Positions 5,410 to 55,782 of a stretch of 64,000 nt of DNA are shown piece by piece. The position numbers and the translations under genes are program-made. The notes under the pieces are model-generated. The model did not search any database, had not been told where the DNA came from, and saw nothing but the letters and a program-made list of their open reading frames with translations. Source of the DNA: Blastocystis sp. Blastoise (lineage: Eukaryota; Protista; Bigyra: Opalinata); NCBI GenBank assembly GCA_039096225.1, contig JBBPEB010000032.1:186001-250000 (forward strand), in the 5' to 3' direction. The first letter of the stretch is position 1. Every line of letters begins with the position of its first letter.

Positions 5410-7132
5410 TTATAAAGAAGATAATTCTTTTTGAATTTTGTTAAAATATTTATATATCTTTTTTTGAATTTTCTGTCTATATCTCGGATTTGTCCACTTT
5501 GAGAACGAGTCGATAATTGTATAAAAATGTTGCATAACTCCATTTTCAATCCATTTATTTTTATAAACATAATCTTTCCAATATTCCCAAATACTATATA
5601 TATATATATATATATTTAATTATGAATGATAATTAATATATTGCGATTTTAAAAAGATATTATATATATATACCCAGCTATAAAAATAGAAAGACACAAA
5701 CAGAACATAAATTGAGCTTGGAAACTATTTTTAAAAAGTACAGGACTTCTATATATAATATAATATATTATAATAGAGTATAATAAAGTATAATATATAA
5801 TAGAGTATATACTGAATCATTAGAATTGCCGATATTCCCGCGGTTATGACCCAGAAGGAAATAGAGAATCCTTCTAATACGTATATATATGAAGGAACTA
5901 TTATATGTATAAGATAGTATTATATTTATTATTCTTATATTTATATAAATATTTCTCATCATATATATATATATAATAAGTATAATTAAAGGATATAGTT
6001 TGTGTCTGACTATCTCTCACCACATAAATATATGAAGATGGAGAATAAGGATTCTGTTGATAAAGACTTGTTTTATGAATAATATCATAAGGAAGACCGG
6101 CAATACATACAAATAATACAATCTATATGAATATATGTATATATAGAATAATAATGATGATAAAAAAGAATTTTATATATAATAATTATTAATATATATA
6201 TATACCATGACAAGTATAAACCAATTATATCGGTTTTGAGCGGCATTCCAGAGATTATCACCAAAAGGCATCATATAGCAAATAACCACGGTTATTACTA
6301 TAACTATTAAAAGAGATATATATATATTGGATTCTGAAATAGCGGGTTTTACCTATGAAAAATAATAATATATATTATTATTAAGAAATATATATATATA
6401 TATACATTCAATCCTGTTTTCGTATTAAAAAAACTGAATAATGCTGAAACTGAAAAATCTTGTTTTTCATAAATATTTTTCTTTTCGATTTTCCAGTGAG
6501 ATTTGCTTGTTAATTTAGCAGATTTTGGTATATAGGCTATTACAGGAACTGTATCAAAATTATACTATATAGAATTATAATAGCATATTTATAATAATAA
6601 TAATAAATTTACAATAATAATAATAAATTTACAATAATAATAAATTTACAATAACTATAATAAATTTATAATAATAATAATAAATTTATAATAATAATAA
6701 TATATATTCAACAAAGAATATAATTTAAAAAAATAAAACTTTCAACAATATATAAAAAAGAAATCATGACCAATAAGTAAAATATACATTACGATACACT
6801 TCCTTGGATTCTTCAAAGTATAGTTTAACAAATACAACAGGTTTGTCAGGTGTATAATAACTTTTATAGGATCTTGCCATTTCTTGAGGGACAGAATCAA
6901 CTTCAGAACAGGCTCGACATTGATATCTTGGATCAGTAACAGAGAAAAAAACAAGTGAATCATATGGACGACTTGATGATTCAAGATAATCTGTGTAATT
7001 TCGATCAGACAAATAGAGATAAAAATTATTGTTGATTATTGTTGCTAATCTTTTATCCTTTGTTTCAGCTTCACACGAATGTATTAAGACACATATAATA
7101 AAAATTACAATAAAACTAGATTGACGAAACAT
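5410..7132 (-). CDS. OST3/OST6 (MAGT1/TUSC3-like) oligosaccharyltransferase subunit
   Basis: Signal peptide; thioredoxin-like domain with RPYDSLVFFS...CRAC; TM segments and ...RDSQTQT|VLEGFSISFW. Contains one AT-AC intron (5881-5996). Confidence 0.8.
5881..5996 (-). other. U12-type (minor) AT-AC intron
   Basis: Minus strand: exon ACT|ATATCCTTT ... TTCCTTCAT atatatAC|GTA TTA GAA GGA. Canonical U12 5' splice site and branch site; removal restores the frame (QT|VLEG). Confidence 0.9.
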
Positions 7133-7906
7133 GCTGTATATAGATAATAAAAATGAAATTCTTCTTGAAAACAGAAGTTTATACTTTTTTTTTTGCAGTT
7201 TTGCAATAAGATTATATATAAATGCTATCAATTACTGATTCAGAATATCATTACATTGTTAACTGTCTATTACATACTAATTGAAGACATTTTTGAAATC
7301 AATTCTTTTTCGTTCTTCATCAAATGACAGTTACATAGTTCTAGACTTGTTTAGCATTATTTTTCTATGTATTACTCAACAACAATTCATGCTTTTAAAA
7401 TAACAATTTTATGTAAATGTTTCTAAATCACAAAAAATAATGATTATTATATTTTATATCGTATTTATGCAAGTTATTACATGCTTTATAGAAACAATTA
7501 CACTTTTATAATGGCTAATGATCCAATGTTGCGTCTTTTTTACAATTAACTTGTACTTTATAGTTATTCTCATACATATTTAAATACAACAATAGTTTTT
7601 CCTATTCAATAAAATAATAATATCTTCATATACAGTTCAGAAACTTTATTTGTTACACAAAACATAGAAAGTGTTGATTATTTTTCCCTGACGAAATAAT
7701 TAGATAACCGCGATTGTTGTCGCTTCTTTGTACGTGTAAGTTTAGAAAAAAGAACACAACTCTCAAAAGAACAACAAGAAAAGCGCATCATTATTTATTC
7801 GTTGTACATATTTTGTGTTTTATGGGAAACTGACAAATTATTTAGAGAGTTTATTCTTATTAATTTTAATTTACTAATCAATTTAAAATATATTGAAACA
7901 AAATTC

Positions 7907-53000: not shown

Positions 53001-54807
53001 GTAAATATTATAAACATAATAAAAATAGTATTTATTCTGAACTGTTATAAAAAACTAAAAATAAAAAATAAATAAAATAAAAAATAATAAAATAAAAAAT
53101 AAAATAAAAATAAAACAAAAAATAAAATAAAAATAAAATAAAAATAAAATAAATAATAATAATAATAATATTATACTTATTATCGGGAAGAGTGAAGAGA
53201 AAGTCAGTCGGATAGTGGAAGTCTGCGTCATAATACTCGTATGTGTGATAAGGATCCGTAAGATACGAGGGTTGGCACGTGGTACACATGTGCATGGGAG
53301 ACATCGTGATAGCAGCATCCAAAAGAAGAGATGAAGTACATTCTATATATATATATATATATATATTATATATATTGAATATACCGTAAGGACTTTTAAA
53401 TGAAGAAATAGCCATAAAATCAAATGTATCATATTCTTCTGATTCCCGTGGGAATTCATGAACTTCAATAGATATATACCCATAAGGAGTATCATTAAAA
53501 ACAAGATCATTTAGAGAAATACTATATATATATATAATAAGGATACAGAAGTAAATGACTGATATATGTATATATATGTATATATACATTAAATAGGGAG
53601 ATGCAGTTTCTGTAGAATAATTAGGAACAGTTAGTGGATTCAGATCTGTTCTATATATATATAAATATTAAATAAATATATTAATTATATAAATAAATAT
53701 TAAATAAATATATTAATTATATAAATAATAAATAAATATATATATATAAACATACGTATTGAGATTATTGGAAAAAATAAGTTTTCCTGCCCAATATATA
53801 GCTGTTGAGCTAGCTTTTCTCACTACGAGAATGACGCTTAATAGATCCCCCAGTGTTTGTACGACAAGACGACGACGATAGTAACGCGTAATAGCGGTTC
53901 TGGCGGGGAATTCCCCTCCTGTGGCGGTAGCCCATAAGGAGTCATCATAAGCATCCAGTTGCCATGAAGAATCTAGATGAGCAATATCCGTATATTTCCA
54001 TGAGGCACCGAAGGAGACAAAGGTTGTTACTATAATAATAATATTAATAGAATAATAATACTAATAAATACAATAATAATACTAATAAATATAAACATAA
54101 TATAATCAAAAAAAACATTGTATAAATACGATAAAATATTTTTTCATAAGATTTTCCATTTGATTGAGAAAGTGTTAGAAGCAATACTTCATAGGAACCA
54201 TATCGAATTTGGACAAATGAACCAGAACTCCAACCATATTCAGAACTATATTTTAAATAATAATTATATAAATATTCTAATAATTTCAGTCATATGAATT
54301 AATGAAAAATTAGAAAAAAATAAAGAAAAACTAGAAAAAAATAATAATTTGTTACATACTTTGATGTTAATGATATTGTATATTTTCCAGGAGATATACA
54401 AAACTTGTAGGTAGAGTAGGAATTCTTATCAACGTCATCTCCTTTAACATAAAGGATGACAGCACCAGTAGTAGGTTCACCTTGCCAAATAGCGAATGCT
54501 TCCATGGATGCTTGAGTTGTGTAATGCCGTAATACAGTTGCTTCAAAAGCATTACTAGCACAACTTGACCCTACACAAATGAATGAATTACTTTTTATCA
54601 AATTAACATACCTAACACTTGATATAGTAATAAAAGAATACAAAATGCAATGAAATGCATTAATAATTCTTAAGTCTTTAAATTGAAAGGTATCTGTCAA
54701 ATACTAGTGTTTTTCCTAAACTAGAGAACGTTTTCTTTTGTTTCTACTAACCTTAAAATAAACATAAAAAAAAGAACAAAATAAAGGCCAAAATCTATAA
54801 TTTTCAT
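47034..54807 (-). CDS. Large type-I surface protein (about 2200 aa): galactose-binding/F5-8-like and putative Ig (He_PIG-like) modules, one TM, long Ser/Thr/Pro-rich cytoplasmic tail. 5' exons uncertain.
   Basis: Three Ig-like LP.GLS....TGE(I/L).G motifs; P..W...GS.D...W.LLD motifs; repeated W.Y modules; TM YILYIIISSLLILIILIGCFFLY; 5.1-kb last exon. Confidence 0.8.
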
Positions 54808-55782
54808 GTTTTTTTCTATTGTTCCTCATCAACCATACTCAGCATGAGGCTTTTGAAACATGGAAAACGAATAATCATTAGCCAAGTTGAGTTTATAGAT
54901 TCATTTTGTTATTTAAGTTTTTTTTGTTTCTTCGTTTTTATTCTTTGATCAGTCTCACATATTTGACTCATTTAATACAGCATATCTTAATAAAATTACT
55001 ATGAATTGATTATGGTCATTGCTAACAGTCTTTTCAAATTCATTGTGAATTATGCCATTAATATCATCAAAGCATGCTATTGCATTTTAGACAATCTATT
55101 CAAAATAAAATTCTCTAATCTATAACTTATTAAAGAGTGTAGTAATCTATAGATATACATATCAAAGAATTTATGTATGTGATCATTTGGGAATTATGAA
55201 AATGTTATTTGGATATTATAGACATAAAAATACCAATTTCATGTTCATGGGAGTGAATAATATTTTATTATCCTTCACTGTCTGTTATAACCATTTCTCA
55301 ATGTACTGCTCATGCAGTCTTACGTAATCAAAGAAGCTAAACCATAAATAATAGAGGAATATAACAACAAAAACACAAATACTAAAAGTATTTCTCATTG
55401 CTAGTGAAAAACATCAATAAATTACTATATTCATAATAGTCTATATCATGTTCAATATAAAGAAAAATAGACCTTGTTAAATAGAAAATACTAAAAGAAT
55501 TCAAGATCCAATCAATCCCTTTTATTATTTTAGTAAATATCGAATAAATTTGAGATTCTTATTAAAGGTATTTCCTTTCAATTAAAAATAAAACTTGATA
55601 TCTTTACTAATCCTGTCATTTTGGAAAAGAAAAGAAAATCACTATGAAATCTTATTTTCCCACGGGAACATGATTCTATACAGTATTTTTAATCGAGATG
55701 AGACATTTCTTTTAGTAGAGATATTAAAACTTTACTTCTGTTATTATTATATTTAATCCTTGTTTTATAAACAAAAAGGAAA

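Follow-up and report, generated by a model that had tools for sequence, protein, structure and literature searches.

A 14-bp palindrome dispersed through the genes of an AT-rich Blastocystis genome and its candidate dimeric reader

Why does a GC-rich palindrome recur in the exons of unrelated genes of an AT-rich genome? The question is raised by a 64,000-nucleotide stretch of the genome of Blastocystis sp. Blastoise (contig 21, bases 186001–250000, of a 33.3-Mb assembly in 34 contigs), hereafter called the window, which has a GC content of 25.5%. A preliminary description, made from the letters of the window alone, had listed 17 copies of a 12-bp palindrome with a CpG-containing core and had proposed that the word is imposed at the DNA level, for example by an abundant dimeric DNA-binding protein or by a methyltransferase or repair system. 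Here, we report that the palindrome is a real and strong genome-wide word of 14 bp, that it is composed of two half-sites which are separated by a fixed 2-bp centre and pair independently of each other, and that its flanks are maintained whatever the centre. The sites are probably recognised by an abundant DNA-binding protein of symmetric build, which would act as a homodimer or as a dimer of two closely related paralogues.

The genome of this organism (isolate Rus-B from a Russian tortoise) has been described as 33.3 Mb of DNA with 23.1% GC and 8547 genes, together with native nanopore reads, RNA-seq and two sister genomes (PMC12129017). The words “palindrome” and “methyl” are both absent from that paper, in which the motif search concerned transcript ends only (PMC12129017).

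Enrichment over composition and codon nulls

All 17 of the 12-mers are found at their listed starts, nine of them with the core CCGCGG and eight with CCACGG or CCGTGG, and the symmetry of their flanks was reproduced: C or A stands beside the core in 31 of 34 half-sites and T occupies position −3 in 27 of 34. The estimate that fewer than one CCGCGG is to be expected per 64 kb was likewise correct, with Markov models of order 0–2 giving 0.19–0.28 copies compared to the nine seen (Poisson P ~2e-11). The excess extends to the entire genome, where reversed words (e.g. GGCGCC for CCGCGG) served as composition-matched controls. CCGCGG occurs 2367 times versus 197 times for GGCGCC, the consensus of the preliminary description, THMCCRYGGKDA, occurs 2169 times versus 41 for its reversed control (53-fold), and TTCCCGCGGGAA is present in 113 copies versus none.

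Neither codon usage nor local composition accounts for these counts. In a sample of 38 long open reading frames (ORFs; 42 kb, 31.7% GC), CCGCGG was seen six times, whereas synonymous resampling yielded 0.18 copies and codon shuffling 0.26, an excess of about 30-fold over the codon nulls. A local-GC null (300-bp, motif masked) was rejected as well: a larger local sample consisting of the window and 200 kb of contig 4 (264 kb altogether) holds 17 strict sites compared to 0.395 expected (43-fold), and the enrichment does not change consistently from one local-GC class to the next.

Composition, codon usage, repeats or nanopore base-calling at a modified motif could each, in principle, create an apparent word of this kind, and the assembly was indeed derived from nanopore reads (R9.4, Guppy 5; PMC12129017). 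However, the composition and codon nulls are all rejected at least 30-fold, the reversed-control counts are close to zero, and the host genes of the sites are unique and unrelated. Furthermore, the assembly was polished with Illumina data (three rounds of PolyPolish plus POLCA; PMC12129017), and the A of CCACGG encodes a conserved catalytic-loop histidine of a kinase in one case and a conserved WD40 threonine in another. The polishing and these two conserved residues make a base-calling artefact unlikely, and we give an artefact of any of these types practically no credence.

Anatomy of the palindrome and the question of methylation

The consensus given in the preliminary description fits both halves in 11 of the 17 window sites, with the other six departing from it. 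On the basis of 29 cores (58 half-sites), sampled without bias in the window and the 200 kb of contig 4, the half-site is defined as A-T-[T/A/C]-[C/A]-C-C, in which A occupies position −4 in 41 of 58 cases, T position −3 in 47 and C or A position −1 in 52. The two variable positions are correlated and read TC, AA or CC, the half-site types include ATTCCC, ATAACC and ATCCCC, and the full palindrome is 14 bp long; versions of it are spelled out as ATTCCCGCGGGAAT and ATAACCGCGGTTAT. The outer A and T are enriched around sites of the TTCCC class.

We counted every centre of TTCCC-NN-GGGAA genome-wide (566 copies altogether). The most frequent centre is AC/GT (277 copies), followed by GC (113), AA/TT (~72), AT (71) and AG/CT (~19); CA/TG is found in 6 copies, GA/TC and GG/CC in 4 each, and CG and TA in none. 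In this class the centre permits purine-pyrimidine steps and AA/TT, and pyrimidine-purine steps are nearly absent. As AT and AA/TT centres with perfect flanks are abundant and equally enriched, a CpG is not required, which means that the CpG-centred definition of the motif was too narrow and whole classes of sites had been overlooked. Recognition of the central step probably relies on the shape of the DNA and not on base contacts. The remainder of the site is rigid. The core cytosines are tightly held (9 one-off copies per position versus 113), and the spacing is fixed at 2 bp: a centre of one base pair occurs in 9 copies, and the 140 apparent copies with a three-base-pair centre are mostly 2-bp sites that carry a TCCCC half.

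The two halves of a site are chosen independently. The 63 different sites among the genome-wide matches listed contain 57 TTCCC, 34 TAACC, 23 TCCCC, 8 TTACC and 4 TACCC half-sites. With TTCCC denoted F, TAACC A and TCCCC C, the observed and expected numbers of pairs in these 63 sites are 11 and 12.9 for FF, 6 and 4.6 for AA, 14 and 15.4 for FA, 12 and 10.4 for FC, and 7 and 6.2 for AC. The half-site types thus assort randomly, and hybrids such as TTCCC with GGTTA occur at chance frequency. Because the half-sites pair independently, the arms need no complementarity, which excludes a hairpin or cruciform function as well as palindrome-making repair. A hairpin or cruciform element akin to REP or to mobile palindromes was accordingly discarded, its arms not being mutually complementary and the sites showing no indels relative to orthologues. 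Independent pairing is expected from a dimer of two independent subunits.

The preliminary description had pointed out that CCGTGG and CCACGG are the C-to-T products of the inner C of CCGCGG. An explanation built on this observation would resemble the HIP1 system of cyanobacteria: a methyltransferase would mark the inner C, a linked repair bias would create or protect sites, and CCGTGG, CCACGG and CCATGG would be relics of deamination. The commonest centre variants are indeed transition products of the inner C, and no transversion is present among the 100 copies listed that retain the partner base. Changes at the inner position are seen in 277 copies, compared to 7 with a C-to-T change at the second cytosine of that CpG, a ratio of about 40 that lies within the range of 5-methylcytosine hypermutability. 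This asymmetry excludes generic CpG methylation and decay, although a site-specific enzyme that acts on the inner C could produce it. Mixed centres exceed the number expected from independence (χ2 20.7), as they would if a site, once hit, were no longer methylated, and HIP1 itself is tied to two orphan methyltransferases (PMC4390886).

Several properties of the sites contradict this explanation. The AA centre cannot arise by deamination, and the contrast between AA (~72 copies) and GA (4 copies) is not a mutational pattern. Flank decay is flat over the centre classes, with transition one-offs per position of 0.031 for GC, 0.032 and 0.011 for mixed and 0.042 for AT centres. The flanks are therefore as intact in the AT and mixed classes as in the CpG class, although dead sites that accumulate in an absorbing class should have decayed further. 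Nor does the recognition of 14 bp with three alternative half-sites resemble that of a methyltransferase. Finally, domain searches of the genome returned a single PF00145 gene, which is of the DNMT2/TRDMT1 type (best structural match human DNMT2, PDB 1g55, E 3e-36; PPCQP motif), and no DNMT1/3/5-type enzyme; for PF01555 (N4/N6 family), only a sub-threshold match (22.4 bits) was obtained, other methylase families lying outside the search. The DNMT2/TRDMT1 gene (contig 34, 406469–408306) has its catalytic motifs distributed over at least three exons and contains AT-rich introns of several hundred bases. Taken together, the AA/TT centres, the flat flank decay and the enzyme complement argue against CpG methylation as a part of the mechanism, and we consider the HIP1-like methyltransferase system improbable. 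A dimeric DNA-binding protein, the other proposal of the preliminary description, emerges as the best reading of the motif, on the grounds of its fixed spacing, its independent half-sites and flanks that are kept whatever the centre.

Sites within genes and their effect on codons and proteins

The 17 sites of the window had been described as embedded in coding exons, with 15 of them exonic. Most are exonic: nine lie in proteins annotated by NCBI (five in a 2175-amino-acid surface protein, three in UTP15 and one in PDH E2), one lies in a kinase exon supported by Pfam, and five are assigned to exons on the evidence of ORFs or neighbouring exons. The remaining two, at 23368 and 55657, are outside recognised coding sequence. 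The emphasis on coding sequence, however, does not extend to the enrichment itself, as the ratio of observed to expected sites is 78 outside predicted coding sequence and 40 inside it. The exon bias is largely due to exons being richer in GC and, hence, near enough to the motif in composition for sites to arise.

As had been claimed, the sites are found in unrelated genes and in all three frames (frames 0, 1 and 2 occur), as befits a motif that is imposed at the DNA level. Most of 21 further sites on contig 1 are also located in long ORFs of unrelated genes, again in all three frames, and no functional theme was recognised among the host genes (SNase, DUF676, PIP5K, kinase, UTP15, PDH E2 and giant surface proteins). 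The use of scarce G/C-ending codons was confirmed: the sites employ the rarest codons of each set, namely CGG and CGC (0.4% and 3.4% of arginine), CCG (2.2% of proline), GCG (4.2% of alanine) and GGG (2.4% of glycine).

The influence of the motif reaches beyond synonymous choice. Across 39.7 thousand predicted codons, the motif is permitted by 31 peptides, compared to 19.6 ± 3.6 after shuffling of the proteins, and it is realised in its strict form at 9 positions, where codon usage predicts 0.27. Peptides that permit the reversed word number 36 versus 34, and the reversed word is realised at none of them. The excess of permitting peptides is about equal to the number of realised sites. Combined with a glycine that takes the place of isoleucine or methionine at one UTP15 site (described below), this excess indicates that protein sequences are affected.

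These same properties bear on the possibility that the word is a signal in mRNA, namely a hairpin, a protein-binding element or a rare-codon site of translational pausing. Most sites are transcribed, being in or beside exons, and their codons are the rarest of their sets. Such a signal is nevertheless very hard to reconcile with a palindrome that is present in all three frames, whichever strand encodes the gene, with hybrid half-sites at chance frequency whose arms are often unable to pair, with the weakness of a stem of five pairs at most, and with the enrichment of non-coding DNA; we rate it as highly improbable.

Sites are found at a density of about one per 9–15 kb, and their distribution is uneven. 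They form homotypic clusters (a search of 1.5 kb around 15 strict sites revealed 7 additional near-strict ones) and vary in density from region to region, with 27 strict sites in 112 kb of contig 2 versus 2 in 122 kb. When the window is compared to the 200-kb block, it makes up 24% of the bases but carries 17 of the 29 local sites (P 8e-5). Clusters of sites coincide with patches of high GC content at third codon positions (GC3). With the motif masked, GC3 is 0.5–0.58 in parts of the last UTP15 exon (40531–41415) and 0.24–0.29 in the first 350 codons of the large ORF (51100–52166), compared to 0.10–0.15 elsewhere.

The best-characterised sites of the window are the three in UTP15. Protein matching was performed with exons taken one at a time or with database proteins. 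CTCCCACGGGAG (40692–40703) encodes part of residues 449–461 of P0121 and places a glycine where aligned UTP15 orthologues have isoleucine or methionine. TCCCCGCGGTTA (41027–41038; residues 337–349) lies over a conserved R-G that is encoded by the rare codons CGC GGG, and TCCCCGTGGTTA (41897–41908; residues 149–161) over the conserved W-D-x-x-T-G of a WD40 repeat, with no indel. Together, the three sites cover conserved R-G, T-G and V-x-G and are free of indels relative to the orthologues. A search for sister genomes with the UTP15 exon found only the exon itself, and a search of representative proteins was dominated by giant WD40 proteins, with three true UTP15 matches that came from a chytrid, a transcriptome and Anaeramoeba.

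The largest group of sites belongs to the giant surface-protein gene P0271 (2175 amino acids; window 47034–54700, minus strand). It comprises TTCCCGCGGTTA at 51343–51354 (residues 732–744), CTCCCGCGGGAA at 51959–51970 (527–539), TTCCCGCGGGGA at 52511–52522 (427–439), TAACCGCGGGAC at 52932–52943 (312–324) and TTCCCGTGGGAA at 53443–53454 (218–231). All five are confined to the first third of the gene, within 2.1 kb, and are spaced by 420–620 bp. P0271 is a member of a giant surface-protein family; its paralogues P0272–P0274 are 25–27% identical to it and contain He_PIG, F5/8 type C and HRM domains. Among further family members, located on contigs 1 and 4, some carry motif sites and some have none at all. 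A search for sister genomes with the large ORF returned paralogues only, and a metagenome scan gave nothing above 49% identity. In a 2025 poly(A) gut metatranscriptome from another study (run X2), 7% of sampled words of window 50001–56000 were present; a near-identical organism seems to be expressed in that independent sample.

The kinase site, TCCCCGTGGTAA (17736–17747), is in a minus-strand exon with a Pkinase match (window 17546–17809), where it spells the Y-H-G-D of the catalytic loop. The loop of this kinase reads H-G-D, not H-R-D, and the glycine codon is contained within the motif site. The PDH E2 site, CTTCCGCGGCTC (36471–36482), maps to the Ala/Pro linker of P0001 (residues 125–137). 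Its CCGCGG core has poor flanks and the local GC is 0.41, and it may be a chance occurrence and is a doubtful member of the set. A PDH E2 relative, P0002, comes from a 1.5-kb contig of an organism with 48% GC.

The sites assigned on ORF or neighbouring-exon evidence begin with a second copy of TTCCCGCGGTTA (5835–5846), which combines a TTCCC and a TAACC half around a GC centre. It lies in the minus-strand ORF 5771–6016, downstream of an OST3/6 exon (6764–7231, Pfam PF04756), and this ORF is probably a later OST3/6 exon. TAACCACGGTTA (6283–6294), with two TAACC halves and an AC centre, is in the minus-strand ORF 6176–6352, whose product is hydrophobic and membrane-like and which lies between OST3/6 exons. 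On the plus strand, TATCCGTGGGAA (9162–9173), with one half off consensus, is within the predicted coding segment 8971–9234, and GAACCACGGGGA (43350–43361), also with one half off consensus, is in the coding segment 43221–43754, about 90 nucleotides past an ATG at 43261. TCCCCGCGGGGA (43916–43927) stands at the start of the plus-strand ORF 43908–44141, which has a protein-like sequence and no Pfam match.

Of the two sites outside recognised coding sequence, TTCCCGCGGTAA (23368–23379) is about 140 nucleotides beyond the end of ORF 22345–23229, and neither open frame at this site has a Pfam match. TTCCCACGGGAA (55657–55668) has a low coding score, is located about 350 nucleotides upstream of the first predicted exon of a plus-strand kinase gene, and is probably non-coding.

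Besides the palindrome, no other dispersed GC-rich word was found in the 264-kb sample. Two other candidates were set aside: GTTGCGAC is a subterminal repeat of a hAT nest (31.1–34.9 kb), and GGTATGCC is a coding repeat. AGTTGCGACAA, present 16 times in both orientations between 31100 and 34900 of the window, also belongs to nested hAT subterminal repeats and is not a dispersed genic word. CCTAGG is strongly depleted, with 0 copies versus 9.5 expected in the 200 kb and 1 versus 3.0 in the window. A strongly codon-biased gene on contig 4 (1143516–1149010) contains a long coding repeat rich in proline, glycine and methionine, with a unit of approximately CCTGGTATGCCT; this gene has no Pfam match.

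Candidate readers and known systems

A protein dimer capable of reading exactly such a shape is known, as the TTCCC class of sites matches ATTCCCNNGGGAAT exactly, and ATTCCCNNGGGAAT is the consensus of the dimeric EBF/COE factors (PMC4512700). The two share a 14-bp palindrome, an undefined 2-bp centre and the outer A and T. The resemblance has limits. TAACC and TCCCC halves and the exclusion of pyrimidine-purine centres are outside the published EBF consensus, and EBF sites are regulatory and not spread through exons. To our knowledge, COE proteins are found only in animals.

Candidate families of readers were chosen by resemblance of their motifs. An exon-by-exon search of the genome for PF16422 (COE1_DBD), run without a positive control, found no match at E ≤ 1, and RFX, CG-1, Zn_clus, RHD and CP2 also gave no match in six-frame, exon-by-exon searches of the same type. 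This outcome weighs against a dimeric protein as the reader, as do two further points. The sites are mostly in gene bodies and not in promoters, which is unusual for a transcription factor, and the excess of mixed centres is also expected if a site-specific methylation stops after the first hit.

One searched family did have members. E2F_TDP matches number nine in the genome, seven of them above the cut-off, and represent at least six loci; pairs of matches 2–4 kb apart are located on contig 32 (296068–298258) and contig 29 (1220692–1224762) and might each represent a single atypical E2F gene with two domains or two genes that are neighbours. As a special case of a protein-bound site, the reader could then be a diverged E2F/DP winged-helix protein and the palindromes an expanded set of E2F-type cis-regulatory sites. 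The E2F consensus is TTTSSCGC, and that of plants is WTTSSCSS. ATTCCCGC fits this consensus, the CpG-centred sites with TTCCC or TCCCC halves can be viewed as two overlapping inverted E2F sites, and the domain matches, with their paired arrangement, point in the same direction. However, the CGC core is broken in about three quarters of the TTCCC class (AC/GT, AT and AA centres), the TAACC half-site, which makes up 27% of the halves of the listed sites, has no SS positions, and E2F sites are found at promoters. With most Blastocystis sites lacking either the CGC core or the SS positions, an E2F/DP protein is an unlikely reader.

The everted CCG/CGG core of the palindrome is shared with the yeast PDRE, TCCGCGGA, the site of the zinc-cluster proteins Pdr1 and Pdr3, which has functional variants TCCGTGGA and TCCACGGA. 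The flanks of the PDRE are different, though, no Zn2Cys6 domain was found in the searches of the Blastocystis genome described above, and AT or AA centres would destroy both CGG triplets.

Among words defined by their abundance, the closest parallel is HIP1 (GCGATCGC) of cyanobacteria, a short GC-cored palindrome that far exceeds expectation, is found in all three frames of coding DNA and also in non-coding DNA, uses non-preferred codons, and has had no gene-level function found for it (PMC5861425). These are properties of the Blastocystis palindrome as well. In contrast to HIP1, which is a bacterial 8-mer, the Blastocystis word is 14 bp long, has three alternative half-sites and a degenerate centre, resides in a eukaryote with introns, and occurs at the lower density given above; the PF00145 and PF01555 searches found only DNMT2 in its genome. 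A second parallel is provided by the USS and DUS words of Pasteurellaceae and Neisseriaceae, which are spread genome-wide in genes, are read by a protein and are maintained by molecular drive. Like the Blastocystis motif, these words are written into genes and bend codon and amino-acid choice, but they are not palindromes and depend on natural transformation, and we know of no such process in Blastocystis.

Combining these observations, we propose the following model. Each subunit of the putative dimer would read one half-site, A-T-[T/A/C]-[C/A]-C-C, with the two halves 2 bp apart, and the central step would be read by its shape, such that purine-pyrimidine steps and AA/TT are tolerated and pyrimidine-purine steps excluded. 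New sites would arise by point substitution wherever a sequence comes close to the motif, and they would be kept by a weak directional force acting genome-wide, in the form of selection for occupancy or of a bias in conversion linked to the bound protein. This force would override codon preference and sometimes change an amino acid, and sites would be mostly exonic since only exons are GC-rich enough to approach the motif. The enrichment, the anatomy, the independence of half-sites and the maintenance of flanks are observations made on the sequence, from which we infer the protein dimer.

A version of this model in which conversion alone is at work, with no cellular function of the sites, also has to be weighed. 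The bound protein would shield the site from breaks or bias the repair of heteroduplexes, alleles that carry the motif would be over-transmitted, and the word would spread wherever the sequence comes close. A selfish drive of this kind agrees with the similar enrichment of coding, non-coding and local-GC classes, which suggests a uniform force and not locus-specific regulation, with the unrelated nature of the host genes, with the cost of the sites in rare codons and amino-acid changes, and with the GC3-rich patches that accompany site clusters. Its weak points are the strong regional heterogeneity described above, both on contig 2 and in the window, and its need for the same putative binding protein. 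We therefore consider a purely selfish drive to be unlikely.

Returning to a dimer that recognises the palindrome, its more specific form is that a lineage-specific EBF-like dimer, independent of the animal COE proteins, reads the 14-bp word and that a genome-wide force has spread this word through thousands of gene bodies, a reading that we put forward only tentatively. The force behind such a spread might, with similar reserve, be selection for occupancy at the level of the chromosome or a conversion drive in which a bound site escapes breakage.

Bacteria are known to have hyper-abundant words that override the choice of codons and amino acids, and what causes them is a matter of continuing debate. 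In the literature searched, such words have not been described for eukaryotic genes, and this palindrome appears to be undescribed. The AT-rich background, in which every site stands out, makes it a clean and countable system, and the spectrum of its variants already separates readout by a protein from methylation. Were the reader identified, it would become clear whether thousands of coding sequences can have a site forced on them by the DNA-binding protein that recognises it, and what price the encoded proteins pay. If the EBF-like dimer proves to be true, the palindrome would be a eukaryotic counterpart of HIP1 and of uptake sequences, one that reshapes the codon use and the protein sequences of its host.

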